Source: Orbicella franksi (taxonomy: Eukaryota). From it: DNA of 64,000 nt. The translations under genes and the position numbers were made by a program. Shown here one piece after another: positions 47,332-63,800 of this stretch (position 1 is its first letter; each line of letters opens with the position of its first letter). The DNA lies in assembly GCA_964199315.1 (NCBI GenBank), contig OZ116701.1:11470001-11534000 (forward strand). Direction: 5' to 3'. The notes under the pieces are model-generated. The model was not told the origin of the DNA. It ran no database searches and was given only the letters and a program-made list of their open reading frames with translations.

Positions 47332-47481
47332 GTTGGATGTTGCGGCCTCGCGACGTTGCCGCGATGGATCATGGGTGCTTTTACCGTGAGAGCCTGAACC
47401 GATCTCAAAGAACGCCTGACGGAAAATGGACAATTTGTGGAAAGAATGACTCGACTTTATGATTAGAGTTTATGGTTGCAT
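47332..47481. promoter_or_regulatory. Probable bidirectional promoter for SF3B2 and ELAC1
   Basis: Divergent start codons at 47331 (-) and 47482 (+), 150 bp apart; locally CpG-richer. Confidence 0.7.
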
Positions 47482-50400
47482 ATGGAACTTCACTTTCTTG
47501 GGACAGGCTCTTGCTATCCATCTCCCCACAGGGGAGCATCGTGCACAATTCTTCGGCACGATACTGGCTGTTGGATGTTTGACTGTGGCGAAGGGACTCA
47601 AATTCAATTGATGAAGAGTTCCATTAAACCAACAAGAATTAACAAGATTTTCATCACGCACCTTCATGGGGATCATCTCTTCGGTTTGCCTGGTCTACTT
47701 TGCACTATGGGAATCAACTGTGCTGAAAATAGGGAGCCCATTGAAATCTATGGGCCTGTTGGCTTGAGAAAGTTCATCAGAGTGTCTTTGGGGTTGTCAC
47801 AATCATTGCTTGGCTTTAGCTACTCAGTGAACGAGCTTCACTGTGTTACTTCAGGTGAATTTTTAAGTTTAGTGGCTCATCTGAGGCCATAAGGTTTCCT
47901 CTATATCAGTATTTTGGATACTTTATTTGTATTTAAATACATTTACAGGTGTAGGAAGGGATTTCAACAAATGCCCAATTAATCCACTAAACATTCAGGT
48001 AGAGGGGTAAGATGAGTCAAATTGTAGCAAGATGGTAGTACCCTTGTATCTGGGCCAATATGTAAAAAAAGGCTTCAAGGAATATAACATGGTTTACTTT
48101 ATTTGTGAATGATACAAGATAATAAACATCGTGGCCATTGATTTGCCTTCCCTTGTAATTGATGAAAGAAAACAGTAAGCACAACATGAAAAAAAGCATT
48201 TGGGGCAGCAGTCACATCAGACTAGCATATTCCAGTGGATATCTCTTTTGGTGCAGAAAATACTGTGTGGACATTAATGGAGTGGGGGAGGTGGGGGGCA
48301 CTTCTGATTTTAGCACTTGTTCAATGTTACACACATACAGTATATCCATGATACTTTATTCTATCTCAGAGCAGCCTAAAATAGGCTAGTATCTCCAAGA
48401 AAATGAAAGTCAAACTAAAGTAACACTATGTATAGTGAATAAAATATTAACGTAGAAGAAGTTACAATTAGCCAATTAATTTTTGTTGTCGAATAATTTG
48501 CTTTAATTAGGTCATTGAGACAAGAAATAGCTCATAGTCTGTCAGGTAAAGCATTCCAGAACTTAGCTGCTGTATAAGTAAAGGAATTCAAGCCTTAAGT
48601 GGTAGTGCAAGGTTTAGGAAGGGTGAGGATATCAGTTCCTCACATAAAATAGTCTATAATAATTATGTTAAATTGGCCAATTTCATACATGCATGATGAT
48701 ATAAGCCCTAACCAGTTGCAAAAGGGACCTTCCCAGTGAAGCCAAGCAGAGCTAATTGTCAGGCTAATCCATAGTTAATAGAGGGAAATGGTTGTGAAAC
48801 CCAACAAAGTTCTGTGTTCTATGAATGCAAAACAAAAGATTGTGCATGGTCGTGGACCTTCCATTATAAGTCTCGGCATCTTTGTTTGCTCCAGCCCTGT
48901 GATGTTTGCCAGGCTTCATAGACATTTCTCTATGGCAAATCTAAAACAGAAATCTCTGCCACAGATTAACATAATCAACTTATTAGAAATGGATTTGCTT
49001 CCTAGCCGAGGGATATAGTAAATTACTCATTACTTAGTGTCTTCATGTTGCAAAAACCAGACTCCATTGACAAGGTCTCTGCTGTACTGACTGTACTGAG
49101 AGAAAATCTTTTATGCAGGTTTTGCTCAAGACAGCAGTGTGGAATGGACACACGCCCTCTCTGCATCAGATAATCTGCACCCAAATGAGACTTCTGGGAG
49201 GACAATTTATGAAGGTGATAATGGCAAATGGCAAGTTTGTCAAGAAGGAAATTTAACTGTGTTTGCAGCACCCCTAAAGCACCGTGTTACATGTTTTGGT
49301 TATGTAATACAGGAGCAACAGTTGCCAGGAAAACTGGATCCTGATCTTTTAAAACTGAGAGGTATTTCTCCAGGGCCTCTTTATGGAAAGATCAAGAACG
49401 GAGAAACAGTCACAGCTCCTGATGGCAGCCTGGTGATGCCTGCAGATGTCCTGGGACCACCGCGTCCTGGCCGTAAAGTTGTTATACTTGGGGATACATG
49501 TGACTCATCAAGGATTATGGACGTGGCTTCTGATGCAGATATAGTTGTTCATGAAGCTACTCTTGAAAATGAACTGATCGAAACATGCATAGATCATGGT
49601 CATTCAACTCCAGGTATTTTAATCAATTTATTTATCACTAATGGCGCTCTTCAAGATTTAATTCAATATCAATATTTGAAGGCAGAGTTCTAGTGTAAGT
49701 AAAAGGTACTCTGTATTGTTTGTGAAAAAATAGTAAATTAAAATGTTTTAAATAAGCATTTGATACAATCACAACTCTATTGTTATGGTACAAATAGATT
49801 TGTCATATCGTTGCCATTTGTCAATGATTAATTTTTTTTTCCACTAAGTCTTAAGAGAAAATGCAAAGATGGTCAGAGGAAGCATGCTGCTTAATAACAG
49901 CCTTAACAAATGGGTTGAATTCATTCACTGCAAATAAAGAAATAAAACCTCATTAAGTAATTTTTGATTGTCAAGGTAACGATACTGACATTGTAATAAG
50001 ACATTACAAATCAAAACTATCATCAAATTGAAGGAAAAATGAATGAAAATTAATTAAATAGTGATCTTTAACTCCAGTAGAAAAACACCAAAGATGTGAT
50101 AAATCAATAAATCAATAACATTAATATATAAAGACTATTGTAAATGTTTTATGATACACCATGTGTCACATATAATAAATATTGTTATTTATTTAGTTTA
50201 GGTTCTCTAACATTTTAGCTGTTCTCAATTATTGCATTCATGCTTGCACTTGTGTTTGTTCTTATCCCACAGAAATGGCTGGGTACTTTGCAGCAAAAGT
50301 CCAAGCCAAGAAGCTTGTTCTTACGCATTTTAGCCAGAGATATATGGGTTTTGGTGACAAAAGAGCAACCAAGACTGGTGACTGTGTTAGCATAGAAAAG

Positions 50401-50490
50401 CTTGTTAGGCAAGCAGAAATAGCATTTAAATCAGACAGTGTAATTGCTGCTGAAGATTTTCTGGTCATCAAACTTCCCCTCAAACACTAA
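47482..50490 (+). CDS. ELAC1: Zinc phosphodiesterase ELAC1 / RNase Z short form, 361 aa
   Basis: Exons 47482-47854, 49119-49613, 50273-50490 (phases match, 1086 nt). Motifs: [38 protein letters not shown], exosite [31 protein letters not shown]; AATAAA at 50540-50545. Confidence 0.95.
48541..48645 (-). mobile_element. Decayed L2/CR1-like LINE 3' fragment in ELAC1 intron 1 (duplicated at about 61496-61600)
   Basis: Minus strand reads [32 protein letters not shown], similar to the L2/CR1 RT C-terminus. Confidence 0.55.
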
Positions 50491-51273
50491 TGATAATGGA
50501 TCTTGGGATAAGAAAATGCATACATGTATGTTGTGGTTTAATAAAGGTATATTGGTTTAAAATGTTTCAAACCAGGTTGATCTTTTTTTTCAGTCTCATT
50601 GTTAAAGGGCCATTATAATTATTGTAGCAGACTCATGCAGACCTCAATGAAGCTGTACTCCCCTTGAAGATATTGTGAGTGGTGACATGAAGTGGGGACA
50701 TGCTGCACTGACAGTTTACCTCATTTGACATGCCAGTAGTTCTGTTGCAGGAACAAAATTTTGTTCCTACGACATGCATGAAATTCAGATGGGTTGAATT
50801 CGTGCACCATGAAGCAGGGACAAAATGACCTCAATTCTCAGTGTTGAATCATGTGAACCACTCTAGAAACTGTCTGTACAACAACATAGAAGTGACCCAG
50901 TATCTGTTTCATGTGCACCAGCTTGCATACTGTCTCCACAGCATGCATGCTATGCATACACACTAAGGGACTTGTCCACACTTTGTGTCCTTATGCATTT
51001 CTCCTAGTGTGTGCCAACCTTTAGGAGAATAGGGAGAGGGAAGCTCCCCAGGGAGGGAGATGGGGATGGTACCCCCCTATGAAGATGAGGTGGGTGTGAT
51101 CATGGCACCTTCTTGGGGCTCAAACTCGTCACTTGGCATGTCTTAATGTTTTCAAATCTGAAATGGGGAGCAGTTCAGTTATTCTAGTATCTTGAAAAAT
51201 GTGACAAATTAAAATGACTCGTCAGAAAGAATTGGTACCTCTTGTGGGGTGATAGTGAAGTGAAACCACTAGG

Positions 51274-51466
51274 NNNNNNNNNNNNNNNNNNNNNNNNNNN
51301 NNNNNNNNNNNNNNNNNNNNNNNNNNNNNNNNNNNNNNNNNNNNNNNNNNNNNNNNNNNNNNNNNNNNNNNNNNNNNNNNNNNNNNNNNNNNNNNNNNNN
51401 NNNNNNNNNNNNNNNNNNNNNNNNNNNNNNNNNNNNNNNNNNNNNNNNNNNNNNNNNNNNNNNNNN
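51274..51466. other. Assembly gap (N run)
   Basis: 193 N. Confidence 1.
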
Positions 51467-52308
51467 ATATACTCCTTTTTGCAATAACTATGTGACTTGT
51501 CAATCATGCTCTGGAAATGAGAATACAGGAAATGGGGCAGGAAAACATTGCAACAGTCTGTACTCCAGGGAGGAGTTCAACTCCCTGATATAAACACTGC
51601 TTGTGGAGACATATTGCATTTAAAAACATCACAAAGGGCTAACAAAAATATAGATTGATTTACTTTTAATTAAGTGTGATATATTTGTTAATCACAAAAT
51701 GCAGCATTAAAATTTCACAATGAAATTAATAGCAATATTTTACCAGAGCAATTTTGAAAAGTCAAAACTTACTTCTAAGATTATTATGGACATTACAAAC
51801 AAAATTTGATTGACTGAAAGTGTGAGGCTGGCAGAATGAACTGAGATGTGCCAATAAACTAGCTAACTCGACCAGCTTCAATCCTTGTCTGATTTTGTTC
51901 ATCAGTCATGAACGTGTTTAAAATCATAATCTTATGTGATTGAGGAATCATTTAAAAAGAAATAAATATGCAGCCAAGACCTTTAGCTACATCATAGTGT
52001 CATATTTGCATATTCAGTTTAAGTAGAACATGTCACAATGTCACAATGAGTCCCTAGAAGGAATGCTGCTGCTGTTGTGTATAGAATACTCAGTATTTAC
52101 AAAATGAAAAATAACTTTTAAAATGTTATGGGCAGTGCACATTTTTATTGGATATTAGTGAGTATAGATTACTCTAAGGCATTATTTTTAGGAAGTGCTG
52201 CCTCTTATATGACTCATGAACAAATCATTGATAATTCTGAAAGTAAAGTTTGGGCTAGCTTTATATTTTGCCACCAATGTTAGTAATAGTAATTAAATTA
52301 CTATTCAA

Positions 52309-53481
52309 TCATATAACTGCAAATGGATGGAGATCCAATCCGCCCAAGGCATCTCCATTGAAATAATACACAGGATACTGGTTATTTGGCTGCTGCCCAT
52401 TTGGTCCAGCTCCACCTGCATTTCTCCAGTGCTCTCTGAATCGATCTATTTCTTGCCGTCTTTGTTCCCCCCTCAGGTTGTAAATGCCATTTCCAATGAG
52501 ACCTCCCAATGTCCCTCCTACAGCAACACCAGCAGCCCCACTCCAGGGACCCAAGACAAAAGCGATGGCACCAATGCATCCACCCACCCCAGCTCCTATC
52601 TGGGCACCTGGGGTTCTGAGGGTGAGTGAGACCCATGTGTAAATGACTCCAAAGGCAAAGAGTATCATCTCTATGACTTCTTGAAGAACGTAGATAAGGC
52701 CAGCTCCCAGAAGCTCAACAGTTGCAGGATTCTCCAAGATAAGCCGGAAGATTTGAACAACAGGAGGGAGTGCAATTCCCAAGTTGTCCTCATCAGGGTT
52801 CAGCACGGTGCTAGTTATGATCAAGAAGTTCCTGACATTCAAGATCGCCTCTTGAACCGTCATGGATTTCCCCTGAAGGGTCTGGAATTTTTTCGCATCG
52901 TGATAGGCCCCCTCTAGCAGGCTGATCAGGGACGTGTATCCGGCAAAGTGGCCTGGTTCGGGCTTCTCTGCGCTGGTGGAGATTTCAACGCTTTTCTTCG
53001 CCAAGGAATTGGAAATGCTATTCCTCAACACTTGCTGATGATGCGGGCAGAGGTACAGATCTCGTTTGCCACTTTTCACCTCTGCGGGATTTATGTTGTT
53101 GCAGGAAGGGTGACGACAGACAACTTTGGTCGACATGAAGTTGGGATCAAACTGAAGAAGCACGATTTCTTCGTATGCTCCCAGGTGACCAGGATTTCGC
53201 AAAGTCACTTTGTTCTCAAAGTTGACTCCAAAAAGCTTTCTAGCGTCGAGAAACTTGGATTTGCTCACTTTCGGCGGTGTTGAGACATTTTTGAGGTTGC
53301 GATGAAGATCTCGATGCCAAGCTTGCACCGCCTTTGACACGACTTCGCCATTTATTCGGCCGTCCAACTCCGATCTCAAATACGAATCCTCCATTTTGTT
53401 TCCAACATTTTGGAGTAAAGTCGCGACTTTTCTGTATTGTTTAGCCTTTGATATCTCAGCGTCAGATGCGACTACCGCCAT
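52309..53481 (-). CDS. Uncharacterized intronless 390-aa protein (gene X1): Cys/His motif, helical region and glycine-zipper hydrophobic hairpin
   Basis: Uninterrupted ORF in a good start context (agaATGG); TATA-like motif about 45 bp upstream; a conserved paralog at 58189-59589 differs only by in-frame indels. Confidence 0.8.
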   Translation of the reverse strand: MAVVASDAEISKAKQYRKVATLLQNVGNKMEDSYLRSELDGRINGEVVSKAVQAWHRDLHRNLKNVSTPPKVSKSKFLDARKLFGVNFENKVTLRNPGHLGAYEEIVLLQFDPNFMSTKVVCRHPSCNNINPAEVKSGKRDLYLCPHHQQVLRNSISNSLAKKSVEISTSAEKPEPGHFAGYTSLISLLEGAYHDAKKFQTLQGKSMTVQEAILNVRNFLIITSTVLNPDEDNLGIALPPVVQIFRLILENPATVELLGAGLIYVLQEVIEMILFAFGVIYTWVSLTLRTPGAQIGAGVGGCIGAIAFVLGPWSGAAGVAVGGTLGGLIGNGIYNLRGEQRRQEIDRFREHWRNAGGAGPNGQQPNNQYPVYYFNGDALGGLDLHPFAVI

Positions 53482-53524
53482 TCTTGAAGTTACCGTGTTT
53501 TCCTTGCAAAGGCTATTTGTCTTA

Positions 53525-53700
53525 TTTTATAGAACTCGTTGGGGGAAGCCCCTTCAATCGGCTCCCCATGCAAACGTGCCTTGGGAGAATTTTGCACTCG
53601 TCTGATAAAACATGAGCTCTTCAAACACGATATTATCCTTTCCTGTGCTTGATGACTTGGCACAAATAGGCTTTGGCACGTTGCCCTTTCACTTTCGATC
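53525..53700 (-). promoter_or_regulatory. Putative promoter of gene X1: TATA, kappaB-like and ISRE/IRF-E-like motifs
   Basis: Minus strand TATAAAA (53525-53531), GGGGCTTCCCCC (53541-53552), GAAAGTGAAAG (53686-53696). Confidence 0.5.
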
Positions 53701-55020
53701 ACGCGTTGAGAGCATTTTTGGGAATAAATTATTTACTTCTTGAAGCAAGATTAGATTTTCCCCTTCTCACTGTTTGGGTTCGAACAAATGGTGCTTCTTG
53801 GGAAAGGAAAATGTATTAATGTTACAGTTTTTCAAATAAAAGACTAAGGTAATATTACAGTTTTGCAAATCATCAAAGACTAAATCAACGTTAAAAATAA
53901 ATTTGATTTGATGAGCAAAGTAACGCGGGGAAAACCCCTGGGTTACGTCATTGTTATCTATTGTTCTCCGAAGATCTCGCAAGGTGGCCTGGGATACAGG
54001 TAAGGACTCAATATGGCGGCAAAGGCCGGCCAAACTTAGTGCCGGCTAAGGCACAACAGGGTCGCTGTGACCATGACACAGGCCCCAGGGATTTTGCATT
54101 AGACGGCTAGGCAAACGTACATCAGCCAAGATTATTGCAACTTGTTGCCTAAGAAACAAGAAACCTCTCAAGGACCTCAAGCTTTACGTGTAAGGGGATA
54201 CTGTATTAATATTGTTATGTGCTTCCTTTACGGAAAGGTTGTGATCCGTTTAATGTAGGAGCTCATCATATGTTTTTGTTTATAAATCGATCGAAAGATA
54301 ACAGGAATTACACTTTTAAAAGAACTATGAATACTAATTTTGCTGTCTAAAGTAGTCCCTATATTCATCAGGTCTTTAATCTTTAATAAGTATCCTCCTG
54401 AAACAGTGGAACTATACTAGGAGTTGAAAATAACATAATAAAAGCACGTAATAAATAATTGCAATATGTATATATACAGTAAAAATTATAAGTTAGTAAA
54501 AGATAAAATAAAATAGATTAAGTATAATCTCGTCGAGATAAGTTAGGACGTCTGAATATACATTATTATAGGTAGCTATTATTAAACTCCAGTGTACAAT
54601 TTCACAGCCATAACTTCTACTAATACAATTTAAACTTATACGTAAAGCCATGGGCTAGCTATGGAAGAAGACATATCCCAGTAACCTGAACAAGCTCGAA
54701 AAAGTATCACAAAAGAACAATCAAACTCTACCACTCCCTTGAAAAAATATCAGTATCACTAATGGGCACAGCTTACTCAAAAAACAAACAAACAAACAGG
54801 GAGGAACTATTGCCCCCTCCCCCCCCCCCTTCTTTTTTCCACACCAGTCCTGCAAAAAAAAAAAAAAATGAAATGAACACAATCTTACATGAAAGTAGTT
54901 GTTTGGGCTGTAACCCCTCCCTCCTGGTATTTATACCCCTGTAATGGTACCACACCATGAAGATCAATATAAAGATATTTTAATTCTAGAGTAATAAAAT
55001 ACAATAATTCTCAGGACTAA

Positions 55021-55406
55021 GGCCCAGTTCAGATGTTGTGCCTCTGCTGTGCCAAACTAAATTCAGGAATAAAGTACAACAAAAGCGCAGCAGAAGCACA
55101 GTGTCTGAATCAAACCTTTGAATTAAGTTTGACAAGCTCTGCTGTGCTACACGACTCTGGTATGGCAGCGATTCAAACATAGTGCATCTGTCGTGCCAAA
55201 CAAAATTCACAAATTATATTACCGTGTTTTGGTGAAATTATGTTCCCACAGGAAGTTAGGAGGAGAACTGTTACGAGGCATTCAATAAATCCTGAATTTG
55301 GTTTGACTCTGGCATGACGTCTGAATCAGAGTTGTTTTTCTGCTGTGGTACAGACCAAAGTTTAATTTAGTTCAGCACGGCACAAGCATGATGTCTGAAC
55401 TGGGCC
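55021..55406. mobile_element. PIF/Harbinger-like MITE
   Basis: TIRs ggcccagttcaga / tctgaactgggcc flanked by a TAA target duplication on both sides (55018-55020, 55407-55409). Confidence 0.75.
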
Positions 55407-56540
55407 TAAAGTACTTAAATAAATTTACGTAAAAACTTTTGTTTTCATTGCTGGCATGCTTTAAATGTGGCTAAGTAAATGTTTTGAAGTAATTATTAAC
55501 CTCGTACTAACCAAGCACAAGGGCCATAGTTGGGAATATTGACCCAAGGTTGTGGTAGTATGGACCTAAAGCAGCGAGGCTTGTACAAAAATGACTGAAT
55601 GCCAATATTTCGCAGTACAGTTCAAGCCAGCTAGGTTGATTTACTAAGTACTTTATTGTACGGCACTCGGACCATTCTTGTTTCGAATTTACCTGCTTTG
55701 GAAAACAAAACATAGACAGCTTATATCTGTTTGCATGGAAATGGTCTCTGTGGCAAAATTTTGACAAAGAAAGAACCGACCAGAACGGGCAAATTTTCCT
55801 CAGACTACTGTATTGAACTGGAACAATGTGGAGACCATGAGCTGTCATTTGAGGCTTTGGTTTAATGATTATGTTACACAAAGTAAGAAATGATACAAAA
55901 AGATATATGTTTACCGATCTCAGGCAAATTTGAAACAATTGAATCAAAGGCTTAATTAAAGGTATACAATTTCTAACAAAAACTGTGAAGGCGATATAAA
56001 ATAGGGTGTAAGAAAGTAACACACAAGAAACAATAATTGGTTTGCATATTGCGATGAAACTAATGAAAACAAGATACAATATAGTTTTTTTGTCTTCAGT
56101 GTCTAGAATATTACATTATGTTAATACATTTGATACAATCGTAACTCTATTATTTACAGCAAAAAACCAGATTAATTTTTTTGATTACTTAGTGATGCAT
56201 TTTTGATAGCCTTCTGAATCCTGATGACTTCCATTAAAACTATTTTGCAAATCAAATTGCATTAGAACAACTGTGCAAGTCAAAGATTTCAATTGTCAAA
56301 GTGTGGACATGGAGTTTCTCAACTCCAATATAGTTCAAGACCCATTTAAAACAACAGCCATTTTTTGCAATGAACAGATCAAAACTACCATCAAACTGAA
56401 GAAATATTCCATGAGAAAAAGAGGATAGAACCTATCTTCTTCTTAAATATATACCAAGTTTAGGTTCTCAAACATAAAAGAGTTTCCTTCAATTACCTCA
56501 TTTAAGTTTGCTCTTGAATTTGTTTGTTTTTATCCTACAG

Positions 56541-56761
56541 AAATGGCTGGGTACTTTGCAGCAAAAGTCAATGCCAAGGTGCTTGCTCTTACACATTTTA
56601 GCCAGAGATATAAGGGAGTTGGTGAAAATGTAGCAATCAAGACTGGAGACTGTGTTAGCATAGAAAAACTCCTCAGACAAGCAGAAAAAGCTTTTAAATC
56701 AGACAGTGTAATTGCTGCTGAAGATTTTATGGTTGTTCACATTCTCCTGAAACTTAAATGA
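56541..56761 (+). pseudogene. ELAC1: Diverged orphan copy of ELAC1 terminal exon (frame open, acceptor intact)
   Basis: tatcctacag|AA ATG GCT GGG..., [36 protein letters not shown]; flanked by remnants of intron 2; no exon 1 or exon 2 nearby. Confidence 0.75.
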
Positions 56762-58188
56762 TACTGGATCTTGGGCCAATAATTATAAAATGCATATGTT
56801 GTGGTATGAAAATTTCAAAGCAGTTTGGTTTTTATTTTTCATTCTCAGTTACAGTTAGACTGTTCACAGCCTCTCTATATTTCAACGCATGTGAATAATA
56901 ATGTGAGCAAAGTGAGCATGAGTGCAAAAGCACGATGGGGTGGGGGTAGGGAGGCAAGCAAAGTGAGCTCTTAATTCATCTCAGTTCCACCCCATACCCT
57001 GTCAAGTCATCCATTTTGCACTTGTGCCCAGTTTTCCTAAATATGAGAGTCACTTATAAAAGAAGATAGAACAATAGGTAACAAAATCTATGCGAAAAGT
57101 GGCAGTAGGATTATGTAATCTATCACTAGGCTAACAATAAACTTGTACAAAATCTTAAATGAATATTTACAAAACAAGTTGACAAGGTATAATATCCTAT
57201 TGAGTTAACTAACAAATTTAAATATGCTACTGCGAGTTTGCTATTAATAATTATAGTTTACAAGGGTATACCCCAACTAAAGCAGGAGAACAAAATTTTT
57301 CAACGTTTATCGTTTTCTTCCTTTTGAATGCTTCTTAGTTCAAACTGTGACTTAATTCCCTATGACTGTTACTTAGTATGATTTATGGCAACCTCCTTCC
57401 CAGGGTCGCTGCCTGGGAACGAGGTTTGGCACTCCACAAACAGTACCTTTCAAACTTATATGAGAATTATGTGTGGATTTTGGGTCTCTATATAATTACT
57501 GTTTTACACATATATGACACAATATGCGGTAAATTCTCCCACGGAAGTGAAAGAGTTAATGAGTTAAAAGTTAATCCCGTAAAAGAATTTTGGGTTTAAG
57601 CTTTATAATAACCACAATAATAACATATTCATGTCGTGCCTTAATTTAGCACTCTAAGGGGCTTTACAAAGTGTTAAAGCTTAGTTCAACTGCTAAAACT
57701 AGTAATACAAATACAAAGGTAAGAAATAACGAGTTTAGCAAAATGTGTAAAATAAAAAAATAAAAAAACTAACTATACTAACTAATAAAACTAAGACTAC
57801 ACATGTTATGTAGAAAAAAACAGTTAAGATTAGTTTTAAAAGAACTCACAGTATTAGTTTCTTTTAATACATACAGTACCATGCCTGTGGTAACCTGTTC
57901 CAAAAAAAAGGCAAATCTTCATATCACTATTGCTTAGTCCTGGGGACACATAAATGAGACATGCAGAATGTAGACAATGGCCTTCCAGATGTGTATCTGA
58001 GTGTGTAGTAGATCAAAACTATGCAGGCAGGTGCTAAATTTACTTAATGCTTAATTAAATCCTTAATTTAATAATGAATTTAATTATAGTGCACATGAAA
58101 GTATTAAAGAAGAAAAATGTTAAAAATAATATGTTGTTCAACTGGCAGCCAGTGAAGATCCTTGAGTAATGGTACGGTGCAAGTTTTG

Positions 58189-59589
58189 CTAGCCATTATA
58201 GTAACATTTTTTGTTCTTCATATGGCTGAAATTAAAACGCAGATCCAACGTAAACCCTCCCTTGGCATCTCCACTGAAATAGTATGCAGGATACTGATTG
58301 TGTGGTTGCCTGTTTGGCCCCAATCCATCTTTTTCTTGCCATCTTTGTTCCTCCCTCAGGTTGTAAATGCCATCTCCAATGAGACCTCCCAAGGTCGCTC
58401 CTACAACAGCACTAGCCAGCCAACTCCAGGGACCCAAAGAGGCAAAAGCAAAGGCACCAAAGAATCCACACACACCAGCTACTATCTGGGCACCTGGGCT
58501 TCTGAGGGCGAGGGACACCCATGTGTAAGTGACCTCAAAGGCGGAGAGTATCATCTTTATAACATCTTGAAGGCTAGCTACCAGACGCTCAATAGCGTCA
58601 GGATTCTCCAAAATAAGTTTCAATATTTCAACAACAGGAGGCAGTGCTATACCCAGGTTGTCCTCATCAGGGTTCAGCACGGTGCTGGTTATGATCAAGA
58701 AGTTCCTGACATTCAAGATAGCTTCTTGGACCATCGGGGAATTTCCCTGAGGAGTCTTGAATTTCTTCGCGTCGTGAAAGGCCCCCTCTAGCAGGCTGAT
58801 CAGTGACGTGTATCCAGCAAAGTGGCCTGGTTCTGGCTTCTCTGCACTGGTGGAGATTTCAACGCTTTTCTCCGCCAAGGCATCGAAAATGCTATTTCTC
58901 AACACTTGCTGATGATGCGGGCAGAGGTACAGATCTCGTTTGCCACTTTTCGCGGCTGCGGGATTTACGTTGCTGCAGGAAGGGCGACGACAGACAACTT
59001 CGGTCGACATGAAGTTGGGATCAAACTGAAGAAGCACGATATCTTCGTACCCCCCTATGTAACCAGGATTTCGCAAAGTCACTTGGTTGTCAAAGTTGAC
59101 GCCAAAAAGCTTTCTAGCATCGTAGAACATGGAGTTGGTCACCTTCGGCGGCGTTGAGACGATTCCGAGATTGTGAAGAAGATCTCGATGCCAAACTTGC
59201 ACCGTCTTCGATTTCGATACTTCGCCGTTTATGAGGACATTCAGCCTGGGAGCAGGCTCTTTTGACTCTTCAATGTCTTCAGCCTCTTGGGGCTCTTTTG
59301 GTTCTTCGTGCTCTGCAGCCTCTTCACGGTCTTCAGCCTCTTCGGGCTCTTCAAGCTCCTTAGGCTCTTGAGGTTGCTGGCGGAGAAGGAGAGAAACTGG
59401 AGAAGGAAGGCGGTCTAACTCAGCTCTCAAATTCTCGTCAGGTTCTTCAGACTCGTCGAGAGGAAGGAGAGAAGTTAGGCTGTCTAACTCCGTTCTCAAA
59501 TACTCTAAGTTGTCTCCAACATCGAGTTGTCTGGATCGTTTGTTTTTGGCTTTTGATTTCCCTTTAGCGCCATATACTATTACTTCCAT
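58189..59589 (-). CDS. Uncharacterized intronless 466-aa protein (gene X2), paralog of X1 with acidic N-terminal repeat insertion
   Basis: Uninterrupted ORF; the core aligns to X1 (DARKLFGVNF, IVLLQFDPNFMST, KSGKRDLYLCPHHQQVLRNSI, QEAILNVRNFLIITSTVLNPDEDNLGIALPPVV identical). Confidence 0.8.
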   Translation of the reverse strand: MEVIVYGAKGKSKAKNKRSRQLDVGDNLEYLRTELDSLTSLLPLDESEEPDENLRAELDRLPSPVSLLLRQQPQEPKELEEPEEAEDREEAAEHEEPKEPQEAEDIEESKEPAPRLNVLINGEVSKSKTVQVWHRDLLHNLGIVSTPPKVTNSMFYDARKLFGVNFDNQVTLRNPGYIGGYEDIVLLQFDPNFMSTEVVCRRPSCSNVNPAAAKSGKRDLYLCPHHQQVLRNSIFDALAEKSVEISTSAEKPEPGHFAGYTSLISLLEGAFHDAKKFKTPQGNSPMVQEAILNVRNFLIITSTVLNPDEDNLGIALPPVVEILKLILENPDAIERLVASLQDVIKMILSAFEVTYTWVSLALRSPGAQIVAGVCGFFGAFAFASLGPWSWLASAVVGATLGGLIGDGIYNLREEQRWQEKDGLGPNRQPHNQYPAYYFSGDAKGGFTLDLRFNFSHMKNKKCYYNG

Positions 59590-60820
59590 TCCTGAATAAA
59601 TTGGACACCACTCGTTTCCTCTACCTTTCAGACAGGGCGACCGAACGTGAAAGTATTAAAGCCTGTTTGCCTTGCAATACATTGTTTTGGAACAGAAGTA
59701 GGGAAAAACCCCACGACTCGGCCCATGTTTACTTTCACTTTCGATCGCCCAAAGAAAGGCGTTTTGGTTGGAGTGCCTTTAATAAATCTGGACGTTTGAA
59801 AATACATTAGATTTCTCGAAGCAAGTTTAGATTTGCTGATTTGCACTGTTTTGAATTCAACACTATGGTATTTCTACAGAATAGGGAAACGTAGGAGAAA
59901 TGTATTTTATCGTTACAAATAACGTTGGAAATAAATTTGATAGGTTTGATATGACGGGTTAAAGTAAACACTTGGATGTTTTCGTTGGACAAAGGGAAAT
60001 GTCAGCCTTAAAAGCACAGGATCGGTATCGAACCCAGAACAATCAAGACATTGGTGTGTCTCAGTCACTGGAAAGCTGGCTCTCAGTAGTCTGAAACTGT
60101 AAGAATATATCGTATATAAAGTAAATACACACTAAGTGATCTTGGTGTTTTAATTTAGGCAGATGCTCTGTCATGCTTGTCAGGAAAAGTGATCTTCCCG
60201 CTCCTATGACGGTTTGTAGGGGAGGAGTGTTTACATGTGAGCACAAAGAGACCGTACAGCATCTGCGTAGGTGACCATTTGTCACAATGGACGGTCAGTA
60301 ATGATCAAATTAACACAATAAAGCAATAAATTAGAAAATAGATTATAGCCAAGCTCTATTTTAGTAGAGAAGTTAAATTGGGCTCAAGATTGATTGATTG
60401 ATTGCAGTAAATTTTCTTTAATCAATTGTCAACTGCAAACGTAAAATGTCACAATGAAATATTCATTTGCCTGAGAATACTAACATCTATGCATTTACAC
60501 AATAATTATCATGGATGGCATTTCAGACACAATTAGTCTACAATTGATGGACAGCTTGAACTTGATGATGTCAAGCTGGCAGAAATCAAGCTCGTCCCAC
60601 ATGCACTTCAATGTATGTAGTCTGATTTTGTTCATAGTCACAAACACAAACACGATCATTATGTGAAGATTGAATCACCTAGACATGTACAGAAATAACT
60701 GTGTGGCCAAGACAACAGAATAGTTTTCAGTCCCTCCTTATTATTTGTTAATCCTTAAGGAAATGATGTCATTGCAGGGCTGCTGGTCATGGTGTCGTCA
60801 TGGTGAAGCTTGTCAGAAGG

Positions 60821-63800
60821 AGTTTAGTGGCTCATCTGAGGCCATAAGGTTTCCTCTATATCAGTATTTTGGATACTTTATTTGTATTTAAATACATTTA
60901 CAGGTGTAGGAAGGGATTTCAACAAATGCCCAATTAATCCACTAAACATTCAGGTAGAGGGGTAAGATGAGTCAAATTGTAGCAAGATGGTAGTACCCTT
61001 GTATCTGGGCCAATATGTAAAAAAAGGCTTCAAGGAATATAACATGGTTTACTTTATTTGTGAATGATACAAGATAATAAACATCGTGGCTATTGATTTG
61101 CCTTCCCTTGTAATTGATGAAAGAAAACAGTAAGCACAACATGAAAAAAAGCATTTGGGGCAGCAGTCACATCAGACTAGCATATTCCAGTGGATATCTC
61201 TTTTGGTGCAGAAAACACTGTGTGGACATTAATGGAGTGGGGGAGGTGGGGGGCACTTCTGATTTTAGCACTTGTTCAATGTTACACACATACAGTATAT
61301 CCATGATACTTTATTCTATCTCAGAGCAGCCTAAAATAGGCTAGTATCTCCAAGAAAATGAAAGTCAAACTAAAGTAACACTATGTATATTGATTAAAAT
61401 ATTAACGTAGAAGAAGTTACAATTAGCCAATTAATTTTTGTTGTCGAATAATTTGCTTTAATTAGGTCATTGAGACAAGAAATAGCTCATAGTCTGTCAG
61501 GTAAAGCATTCCAGAACTTAGCTGCTGTATAAGTAAAGGAATTCAAGCCTTAAGTGGTAGTGCAAGGTTTAGGAAGGGTGAGGATATCAGTTCCTCACAT
61601 AAAATAGTCTATAATAATTATGTTAAATTGGCCAATTTCATACATGCATGATGATATAAGCCCTAACCAGTTGCAAAAGGGACCTTCCCAGTGAAGCCAA
61701 GCAGAGCTAATTGTCAGGCTAATCCATAGTTAATAGAGGGAAATGGTTGTGAAACCCAACAAAGTTCTGTGTTCTATGAATGCAAAACAAAAGATTGTGC
61801 ATGGTCGTGGACCTTCCATTATAAGTCTCGGCATCTTTGTTTGCTCCAGCCCTGTGATGTTTGCCAGGCTTCATAGACATTTCTCTATGGCAAATCTAAA
61901 ACAGAAATCTCTGCCACAGATTAACATAATCAACTTATTAGAAATGGATTTGCTTCCTAGCCGAGGGATATAGTAAATTACTCATTACTTAGTGTCTTCA
62001 TGTTGCAAAAACCAGACCCCATTGACAAGGTCTCTGCTGTACTGACTGTACTGAGAGAAAATCTTTTATGCAGGTTTTGCTCAAGACAGCAGTGTGGAAT
62101 GGACACACGCCCTCTCTGCATCAGATAATCTGCACCCAAATGAGACTTCTGGGAGGACAATTTATGAAGGTGATAATGGCAAATGGCAAGTTTGTCAAGA
62201 AGGAAATTTAACTGTGTTTGCAGCACCCCTAAAGCACCGTGTTACATGTTTTGGTTATGTAATACAGGAGCAACAGTTGCCAGGAAAACTGGATCCTGAT
62301 CTTTTAAAACTGAGAGGTATTTCTCCAGGGCCTCTGTATGGAAAGATCAAGAACGGAGAAACAGTCACAGCTCCTGATGGCAGCCTGGTGATGCCTGCAG
62401 ATGTCCTGGGACCACCGCGTCCTGGCCGTAAAGTTGTTATACTTGGGGATACATGTGACTCATCAAGGATTATGGACTTGGCTTCTGATGCAGATATAGT
62501 TGTTCATGAAGCTACTCTTGAAAATGAACTGATCGAAACATGCATAGATCATGGTCATTCAACTCCAGGTATTTTAATCAATTTATTTATCACTAATGGC
62601 GCTCTTCAAGATTTAATTCAATATCAATATTTGAAGGCAGAGTTCTAGTGTAAGTAAAAGGTACTCTGTATTGTTTGTGAAAAAGTAGTAAATTAAAATG
62701 TTTTAAATAAGCATTTGATACAATCACAACTCTGTTGTTATGGTACAAATAGATTTGTCATATCGTTGCCATTTGTCAATGATTAATTTTTTTTTCCACT
62801 AAGTCTTAAGAGAAAATGCAAAGATGGTCAGAGGAAGCATGCTGCTTAATAACAGCCTTAACAAATGGGTTGAATTCATCCACTGCAAATAAAGAAATAA
62901 CACCTCATTAAGTAATTTTTGATTGTCAAGGTAACGATACTGACATTGTAATAAGACATTACAAATCAAAACTATCATCAAATTGAAGGAAAAATGAATG
63001 AAAATTAATTAAATAGTGATCTTTAACTCCAGTAGAAAAACACCAAAGATGTGATAAATCAATAAATCAATAACATTAATATATAAAGACTATTGTAAAT
63101 GTTTTATGATACACCATGTGTCACATATAATAAATATTGTTATTTATTTAGTTTAGGTTCTCTAACATTTTAGCTGTTCTCAATTATCGCATTCATGCTT
63201 GCACTTGTGTTTGTTCTTATCCCACAGAAATGGCTGGGTACTTTGCAGCAAAAGTCCAAGCCAAGAAGCTTGTTCTTACGCATTTTAGCCAGAGATATAT
63301 GGGTTTTGGTGACAAAACAGCAACCAAGACTGGTGACTGTGTTAGCATAGAAAAGCTTCTTAGGCAAGCAGAAATAGCGTTTAAATCAGACAGTGTAATT
63401 GTTGCTGAAGATTTTCTGGTCATCAAACTTCCCCTCAAACACTAATGATAATGGATCTTGGGATAAGAAAATGCATACATGTATGTTGTGGTTTAATAAA
63501 GGTATATTGGTTTAAAATGTTTCAAACCAGGTTGATCTTTTTTTTCAGTCTCATTGTTAAAGGGCCATTATAATTATTGTAGCAGACTCATGCAGACCTC
63601 AATGAAGCTGTACTCCCCTTGAACATATTGTGAGTGGTGACATGAAGTGGGGACATGCTGCATTGACAGTTTACCTCATTTGACATGCCAGTAGTTCTGT
63701 TGCAGCAACAAAATTTTGTTCCTACGACATGCATGAAATTCAGATGGGTTGAATTCGTGCACCATGAAGCAGGGACAAAATGACCTCAATTCTCAGTGTT

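Follow-up and report, generated by a model that had tools for sequence, protein, structure and literature searches.

Two intact single-exon genes, here called X1 and X2, lie on the minus strand of a 64,000-nt window of the Orbicella franksi genome (contig OZ116701.1, positions 11,470,001 to 11,534,000; the window is the whole stretch analysed, and positions below count from its first base). They are tandem paralogues in an ancient, Anthozoa-wide family of intronless genes. Their products share a Cys-x4-Cys-x17-Cys-x2-His motif, a helical bundle and a glycine-zipper hairpin, and the reading that we tentatively favour, with a probability of about 0.45, is that the family encodes an inducible innate-immune effector, made in the cytosol, that works at a membrane through self-association of this hairpin. 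The family is real and conserved; its function is reached wholly by inference.

X1 and X2 are members of an anthozoan gene family

BLASTP aligns the X1 and X2 proteins across 344 amino acids with 74% identity (E 1e-179) and four small in-frame gaps. Their N-termini are unrelated, X2 having an additional Glu/Pro-rich stretch of about 78 amino acids, and no signal peptide was found in the family protein. The genes that neighbour X1 and X2, for example an ELAC1-like gene, are multi-exon, and the family gene of Nematostella vectensis is, like X1 and X2, a single exon. A sequence-only reading of this DNA had singled out the two long open reading frames (ORFs), each with the Cys/His motif and a glycine-rich two-arm hairpin around a Gly-Pro-Trp (GPW) turn, and had placed them in a family that it did not recognise. 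These points are borne out: both ORFs are intact and single-exon, with an unbroken RNA contig over X1 and one exon in Nematostella; the motif occupies residues 122-148 of X1 and 200-226 of X2; the hairpin is found in both, with several zipper glycines replaced in X2; and the family matches nothing characterised in Pfam or the PDB. RNA sequencing (RNA-seq), which had been proposed as a check, shows X1 to be expressed, its coding sequence (CDS) being covered by RNA contigs. The description of the genes as lineage-specific orphans must be given up, since the family spans stony corals, sea anemones and an octocoral, with members already held in NCBI and UniProt.

A word-indexed search of a 90%-identity cluster database returned 222-228 relatives, and a phmmer search of 1.84 billion cluster representatives returned at least 127 clusters at 50% identity with E up to 0.001, 39 of them below 1e-30. 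Every named member is labelled "uncharacterized protein". Those from corals are Stylophora pistillata LOC111340838, Orbicella faveolata LOC110052401 and one Acropora muricata protein; the N-terminus of X2', a second X2-type copy in the O. franksi genome (L005, 515 amino acids), is the same as that of the O. faveolata protein P0041. Among sea anemones, full-length members are present in Nematostella (LOC5508998 / A7SFJ7; 42% identity over the matched stretches by phmmer, 36% by BLASTP) and in Exaiptasia diaphana (LOC110246908; 32% identity), and the octocoral Dendronephthya gigantea has a shorter member. Pattern searches combined with tblastn, run over 185,579 prokaryotic species genomes and over IMG/VR viral contigs, gave matches to the pattern, none of which was confirmed as a relative. 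With members in corals, anemones and an octocoral and no relative in prokaryotes or viruses, the family is Anthozoa-wide and, as far as these searches reach, Anthozoa-restricted. An origin of the genes by retroposition or horizontal transfer was rejected in view of the intronless Nematostella gene together with the lack of any non-cnidarian relative among the matches found.

Exact-protein look-ups of the Stylophora, Exaiptasia and A. muricata members gave no record. Literature searches by accession or LOC identifier found no paper that mentions the family, a search for "glycine zipper" with cnidarian terms found nothing relevant, and no family member turned up in the supplements of Nematostella immunity papers when these were searched by accession. 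The sequences are thus already public but unnamed, and no paper was found to mention them. As a motif the hairpin belongs to a known kind, whereas the preceding 250-residue domain and its pairing with the hairpin are undescribed. One candidate for an existing name, CARDIB (bioRxiv 10.1101/2025.11.22.689925), was rejected as the same gene, being a CARD protein that adjoins RLRb, whereas the Nematostella member lies between vigilin-like and WD40 genes.

The N-terminal region combines a putative zinc site with a helical bundle

Conservation was assessed in two alignments, A1, made of 42 scleractinian members, and A2, whose 42 members include some with as little as 22% identity. The residues that make up the Cys/His motif (C122, C127, C145 and H148 of X1) do not vary in A1 (42/42) and are conserved to at least 90% in A2. 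A zinc site would be expected to show this, and zinc binding is predicted on the strength of this invariance. Other invariant positions in A1 are FDPN (111-114), KRDL (139-142), G181-Y182, P291, G304, W313 and G326, and toward the C-terminus the columns Q368, Y372, G376, G380 and L382 are conserved. The A2 consensus reads LxQFDPNF, CRxPxC, KRDLYLCxxH, GYTSLIGxLE, LNxRNFLIITNxLLNPD and FGVxYxWV from the N-terminal part through the bundle, and NPGxQIGAGxGG, GP, GGLIGxGxY and FxGxAxGxL from the hairpin to the C-terminus.

The AlphaFold2 model of full-length X1 has a predicted template-modelling score (pTM) of 0.75, with residues 40-290 and the final 20 residues modelled at high confidence and a predicted local distance difference test score (pLDDT) below 50 in the hairpin. 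A model of residues 43-290 alone, made with a diverse alignment, reaches a pLDDT of 87.5 and a pTM of 0.89; in it an N-terminal helix is followed by a small sheet, a loop bearing C122 and C127, a helix that begins at C145/H148 and a bundle of four to five helices. C145 and H148 are placed at the N-terminus of helix 146-162, and a Cys-x4-Cys knuckle followed by Cys-x2-His at the N-terminus of a helix is the arrangement of a structural zinc knuckle or treble-clef-like site. With four protein ligands (Cys3His), such a site would leave no open coordination position for catalysis.

When X1, X2, 42 diverse family members, nine short relatives and the hairpin by itself were searched against Pfam, every score stayed below the gathering threshold. 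A sequence profile search of the PDB gave zero matches at E up to 10, a feature search of the ESM Atlas gave no usable match, and comparison of the 43-290 model with the PDB, VIA-wide, pdb_via, AFDB clusters, the Atlas and a viral library gave no match above noise outside the family. The statement that there is no recognisable fold applies to the 43-290 model as a whole and is not a claim about its beta/zinc part alone. NINJ1 is not among the matches listed by the Pfam, PDB-sequence, Foldseek and VIA searches. Weak shape neighbours that recur among the noise are zincin-like metallopeptidases and RBR (Ariadne) ligases, both with template-modelling (TM) scores of 0.25-0.33, and both are leads at most: neither A1 nor A2 has a conserved HExxH, and the family has one Cys3His site, in contrast to the two zinc sites of Rcat, and no conserved catalytic Cys besides the ligands.

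A glycine-zipper hairpin is the hallmark of the family

The X1 hairpin contains 15 Gly among 51 residues and eight overlapping small-xxx-small-xxx-small matches within residues 292-330. Its two adjacent hydrophobic helices have (G/A/S)xxxG spacing, and the pattern is family-wide, the A2 consensus being NPGxQIGxGxGG ... GGLIGxGxY. Each arm is 19-20 residues long with a Kyte-Doolittle hydropathy of 1.7. Arg and Lys residues, as read from the sequence, flank both ends of the hairpin and are absent from the GPW loop, and the confidently modelled C-terminal strands fit a topology with both hairpin ends on the same side. In short relatives of 60-113 amino acids the same hairpin comes immediately after a helix of strong hydrophobicity (Kyte-Doolittle 2.0-2.9), and distant members carry long insertions between the two arms. 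The glycine-zipper hairpin is a hallmark of the family and is plausibly membrane-embedded.

The recurrent Pfam matches are all below threshold and comprise Gly-zipper_Omp, Gly-zipper_YMGG and FTR1, with C19orf12 seen once. X1 scores 10.5 bits against PF13441 (gathering threshold 28.9); the best relative scores 17.3 bits against PF13488 (threshold 25); 3 of 42 members match the Pfam glycine-zipper families at E <1; and the X1 hairpin scores 11.2 bits against C19orf12 (PF20721; threshold 30), for which 1 of 42 members reaches E 0.0048. The glycine-zipper two-helix modules (Gly-zipper_Omp PF13488, Gly-zipper_YMGG PF13441, Rick_17kDa_Anti PF05433 and human C19orf12, PF20721) are like the coral hairpin in their Gly/Ala-rich arms, small-xxx-small spacing and tight turn; however, the coral hairpin follows a 290-residue zinc/helical domain that those families do not have, and the similarity may be compositional only.

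Copies that consist of the last helices and the hairpin only are also found. Two of these in the O. franksi genome (L009:1441-1914 and L013:1441-1893; C4:11.58 Mb) have no ATG at the expected place and may be relics or exons. In other assemblies, hairpin-only copies are called as proteins of 60-146 amino acids (P0185, P0197, P0213-P0242), several of which start with MVEEAILNVRN and others of which have the hydrophobic helix before the hairpin; they may form a separate short subfamily.

X1 is transcribed from a promoter with immune-type elements

Between 65 and 75% of sampled 31-mers from the X1 CDS are present in RNA-seq assemblies that come from seven or more studies and include several with poly(A) selection. 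When contigs of four RNA runs were placed on 51600-57500, the X1 CDS was covered in 4/4, and the intergenic segment 55540-56130 had zero depth in three of the four, which argues against carry-over of DNA. A 2087-nt contig from one of the runs (X7) is unbroken over 51600-53499, taking in the 3' untranslated region (UTR) and the CDS and reaching 18 nt upstream of the ATG; it ends about 30 nt downstream of a TATAAAA sequence, and the end is followed by 11 non-genomic bases and Illumina adapter. The continuity of this contig and its adapter-bounded end indicate that the X1 mRNA is unspliced, starts near 53499 and has a 3' UTR of at least 700 nt. For X2, 40-43% of the words are present in poly(A) RNA runs, compared with 66-73% in the best unlabelled (probably DNA) runs; X2 is probably transcribed, with less certainty than X1.

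To look for regulatory elements, the upstream 600 nt of each of 11 family genes, which come from at least six genomes, were scanned. A motif resembling an ISRE (interferon-stimulated response element), GAAANNGAAA, is present on the gene strand in 9 of the 11 loci and in none on the opposite strand, the background being 0.074 per strand per 600 nt. The nine loci are Orbicella X1 and X2, both copies of the sister species, two Acropora-like copies, two further coral assemblies and Nematostella, and the position of the motif is -215 in Orbicella X1, -209 in an Acropora-like copy and -211 in Nematostella. KappaB-like sites occur in the same nine loci, with a perfect GGGGATTCCC at -80 in Nematostella. 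Proximal ISRE-like and kappaB-like elements conserved across species, as in these 9 of 11 loci, would be expected of promoters targeted by interferon regulatory factor (IRF) and NF-kappaB.

X1-type copies are constrained and X2-type copies are changing in the hairpin

Ratios of non-synonymous to synonymous change (omega) were estimated by the Nei-Gojobori method. X1 and its sister-species orthologue differ with an omega of 0.25 (0.14 in the helical region and 0.18 in the hairpin), and X1 and an Acropora-like copy with an omega of 0.22; between X1 and X2 omega is about 0.5, at a synonymous divergence (dS) of 0.38. X2-type copies compared among themselves give 0.66-0.92, the upper value being that of X2 against X2'. 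The helical bundle has the lowest omega of any region (0.14-0.26), and the helical region of X2-type copies is still constrained (0.30-0.43). Omega in the X2-type hairpin is 1.8-3.4, from small counts of 23-42 non-synonymous against 4-6 synonymous changes (Fisher p 0.01-0.35), and across comparisons that involve X2-type copies it is 1.5-3.4 (Fisher p 0.01-0.59, again on small counts). In the alignment, zipper glycines are replaced in every X2-type copy, including those in L005 and L015. On these estimates the X1 orthologues are under purifying selection, which, taken with the loss of glycines from X2-type copies, suggests that the conserved function resides in X1. In X2-type copies the zinc/helical domain is retained and the zipper is being lost or changed; these copies could be relaxing or diversifying in the family-defining hairpin, the counts being too small to separate the two. 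The sequence-only reading had taken divergence by in-frame indels alone as a sign of selection on the protein, and this stands for the X1 orthologues, at 0.25, and falters for the X2-type copies, at 0.66-0.92, with the X1-X2 pair in between.

In the O. franksi genome there are 19 tblastn matches to the family, all within 370 kb of one contig (C4:11.52-11.89 Mb). Four intact copies alternate in the order X1, X2, X1' (98%) and X2' (515 amino acids), the X1 copies being 98-100% identical; among the non-intact copies, several have internal stops and many are partial, covering only residues ~216-350. X1', X2' and some 15 of the other matches are situated outside the window. A clustered birth-and-death pattern of this kind is typical of defence families. 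A 12,955-bp direct repeat carries the ELAC1/X1/X2 unit, and a sampled 300 bp (47866-48165 against 60821-61120) is 100% identical; the repeat may have arisen by very recent duplication or be a duplicate made in assembly.

The X copies alternate with copies of a plus-strand ELAC1-like (tRNase Z) gene; two are placed in Table 1, and a third copy lies in the window at about 60400-63470. Three other coral assemblies (L014:13116-13308, L018:8638-9057 and L019:9218-10018) have a Lactamase_B (ELAC1-like) gene convergent to the family gene, within ~2-3 kb of it or of a tandem copy; this gene also matches the Anti-Pycsar Apyc1 model. Adjacency of X and ELAC1 is conserved across stony corals (four assemblies) and is absent at the Nematostella locus (L001).

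A model for action at a membrane and its alternatives

These observations provide the basis for a model in which the protein consists of a variable N-terminus, a compact alpha/beta domain with one Cys3His zinc site, a four-to-five-helix bundle, the glycine-zipper helical hairpin, a charged helix and a C-terminal beta-hairpin. We propose that transcription would start from a TATA promoter with IRF-type (ISRE-like) and NF-kappaB-type sites, that the protein would be made in the cytosol, and that the hairpin would insert into an intracellular membrane or the plasma membrane with both of its ends cytosolic. The small-xxx-small faces would then drive self-association, and either the zinc/helical domain would act at the membrane surface or the hairpin would perturb the bilayer. 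In this model zinc binding, membrane insertion and its topology, oligomerisation and immune induction are each predictions, and pore formation by the hairpin is possible.

Several points weigh against this model. A crude sum on the Hessa scale is unfavourable, at about +3.5 to +3.9 kcal/mol per arm, so that co-translational insertion is not assured, and the low AlphaFold confidence of the hairpin (pLDDT below 50) joins this sum in counting against a simple constitutive anchor. On the side of regulation, the octocoral locus has no ISRE-like motif and a single loose kappaB-like 11-mer at -523, and the most distant locus (P0210) has neither an ISRE-like nor a kappaB-like motif. The promoter motifs are short consensus matches, for which binding by cnidarian IRF and NF-kappaB is assumed from the vertebrate consensus. 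The literature searched by accession yields no link of any member to immunity, and the presence of X1 in RNA-seq data of many studies could mean that its expression is constitutive.

Close parallels are the small hydrophobic, interferon-inducible vertebrate proteins IFI6/IFI27 (Ifi-6-16, PF06140) and IFITM, which have promoters of ISRE type and Gly/Ala-rich membrane segments, as the coral family does, and act at intracellular membranes, as is proposed for it; the stand-alone hairpin relatives of 60-113 amino acids are similar to them in size. X1 and X2 differ from these proteins in being larger by a factor of three to four and in having an unrelated N-terminal domain, and their induction is a prediction only. 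PF06140 gave no match at E up to 10 for the hairpin and nine short relatives, or at E up to 1 for X1 and X2.

Cnidarians have IRF, NF-kappaB, STING and RIG-I-like receptor (RLR) signalling. They are not known to have interferon, and few effectors downstream of this signalling have been identified. The family is a ready candidate for an effector of cnidarian immune signalling, being conserved, taxon-restricted and intronless and having immune-type promoter elements and a putative membrane-active module. Nematostella LOC5508998 would allow direct testing, as knockouts and immune stimulation are routine in that animal, and the N-terminal 250 residues are a candidate for a new domain entry in Pfam and a target for structural work. 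Orbicella is a reef builder affected by disease, and the tandem amplification and decay seen there may mark a locus under pathogen-driven turnover.

A first alternative, which was the idea of the sequence-only reading and which we consider unlikely, is that the protein is a latent pore-former or cell-death executioner: soluble at rest with the hydrophobic helix 258-280 buried, it would respond to a trigger by opening of the bundle, insertion of the hairpin and assembly of an oligomeric pore, and an infected cell or a microbe would be killed, as with MLKL, HeLo, Bcl-2 proteins and colicins. The bundle does directly precede the hairpin, and this bundle, which is modelled with confidence, contains the 19-mer of highest hydropathy (Kyte-Doolittle 2.06); MLKL, fungal HeLo, plant CC-R/RPW8, Bcl-2 and colicin domains are alike in having a bundle with a buried hydrophobic helix beside a membrane-insertable element, and the coral family plausibly shares their immune context. 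The marginal hydrophobicity of the hairpin would suit conditional over constitutive insertion, the promoter is of immune type, and the clustered birth-and-death of copies and the fast change of the X2-type hairpin resemble arms-race families. Among the weak neighbours in structure are the four-helix bundle of MLKL, the CC-R domain of NRG1, Bcl-2 proteins and CAMP factor. However, the Pfam and PDB searches gave no homology to any pore-former, and transcripts are present in many runs with no sign of harmful expression. The most far-reaching form of this idea, in which the family would be Anthozoa-wide, IRF/NF-kappaB-driven, latent membrane-permeabilising executioners with a zinc/helical-bundle fold not seen before, the hairpin forming the lesion and X2-type copies serving as decoys or regulators, is distinctly improbable; if true, it would constitute an interferon-independent arm of cell-autonomous defence that predates the split of stony corals and sea anemones.

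Also unlikely is a housekeeping role outside immunity, in which the protein would be a constitutive membrane anchor, for example an organelle-surface scaffold or a lipid-handling factor like C19orf12, and the promoter motifs would be incidental. The presence of transcripts in many RNA-seq studies unrelated to one another, the strong purifying selection that acts on X1-type copies, the retained adjacency to the housekeeping-type ELAC1 (tRNase Z) gene in four coral assemblies and the sub-threshold similarity of the hairpin to C19orf12 and glycine-zipper two-transmembrane families would all fit such a role. However, housekeeping genes are seldom intronless, TATA-driven and tandemly amplified amid pseudogenised copies; the ISRE-like motif, with its strand specificity, is present in five or more independent hexacoral lineages, which is far more than background would give; and the family was not found outside Anthozoa in the searches made.

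We regard it as quite improbable that the protein is soluble and that its Gly/Ala-rich segment is a packed helical hairpin or a flexible or aggregation-prone element for protein-protein assembly. The unfavourable Hessa-scale sum, the low AlphaFold confidence of the segment and the long inter-arm insertions of distant members would agree with this; the arms are nevertheless of membrane-spanning length with flanking charges that are positive-inside, short relatives have a bona fide hydrophobic helix before the same hairpin, and the sole Pfam similarities, though weak, are to membrane glycine-zipper families. That the genes are non-functional DNA (pseudogenes, transposon-derived ORFs or an assembly duplicate) is very improbable indeed and would concern at most X2-type copies, for although a near-identical 12,955-bp tandem repeat encloses the locus, many degraded copies are nearby and X2 and X2' give an omega of 0.92, the ORFs are intact, their motifs are invariant from stony corals to sea anemones, Pfam finds no transposon domains in X1 or X2, and for X1 the idea is contradicted by the orthologue omega of 0.25 and by transcription.

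Features of the locus

Table 1. Positions of the X1 and X2 genes, their protein and promoter features and the adjacent ELAC1-like exons in the window (numbers in brackets after promoter positions are relative to the ATG)
Feature	Position	Strand	Basis
X1 CDS, 390 amino acids, single exon	52309..53481	-	ORF; RNA-seq contigs end to end
X1 3' UTR, at least 700 nt	51600..52308	-	2087-nt RNA contig
X1 putative zinc knuckle, C-x4-C-x17-C-x2-H (C122, C127, C145, H148)	53038..53118	-	conserved in A1 and A2
X1 helical bundle, residues 181-286, with conserved GYTSLI and LNxRNFLIITxxLLNP	52624..52941	-	AlphaFold pLDDT ~90; conservation
X1 glycine-zipper hairpin, residues 291-335, two 19-20-residue arms around GPW	52477..52611	-	family consensus
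X1 C-terminal beta-hairpin, QYPVYYFxGDAxGGLxL	52312..52380	-	pLDDT 84-86 (full-length model); conservation
X1 promoter and 18-nt 5' UTR	53482..53938	-	sequence, motif scans, RNA contig end
X1 TATAAAA	53525-53531 (-50)	-	sequence
X1 kappaB-like GGGGCTTCCC	53543-53552 (-71)	-	motif scan
X1 ISRE-like GAAAGTGAAAG	53686-53696 (-215)	-	motif scan
X1 kappaB-like GGGGTTTTCC	53929-53938 (-457)	-	motif scan
X2 CDS, 466 amino acids, single exon, Glu/Pro-rich N-terminal extension	58189..59589	-	ORF
X2 C-x4-C-x17-C-x2-H, residues 200-226	58912..58992	-	sequence
X2 hairpin, residues 365-410, several zipper glycines replaced	58360..58497	-	alignment
X2 kappaB-like 11-mer GGGGTTTTTCC	59702-59712 (-123)	-	motif scan
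X2 ISRE-like GAAAGTGAAAG	59732-59742 (-153)	-	motif scan
ELAC1-like full copy, three exons (HxHxDH in the first)	47476-47892, 49139-49693, 50275-50490	+	sequence/RNA
ELAC1-like remnant, last exon	56543-56761	+	RNA joins to 54002-54189, GT..AG intron 54189 to 56541

The plus-strand transcript at 54002-54189 that is joined to the ELAC1-like remnant lies head to head with X1, ~500 bp from the X1 start. In three runs, RNA contigs leave out 197 bp between 54373 and 54571; the ends of the omitted segment are non-canonical (CT..TA), and an indel polymorphism between individuals is more likely than an intron. A run of N at about 51184-51507, in the far 3' flank of X1, is an assembly gap or masked sequence. 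Elsewhere in the window, the plus strand carries a weak GIY-YIG ORF just below the Pfam cut-off (1285-1860), which may be a remnant of a Penelope-like element, a weak reverse-transcriptase fragment (4634-5578) and a calpain (Peptidase_C2) exon at 13268-13723 (E 3e-42).

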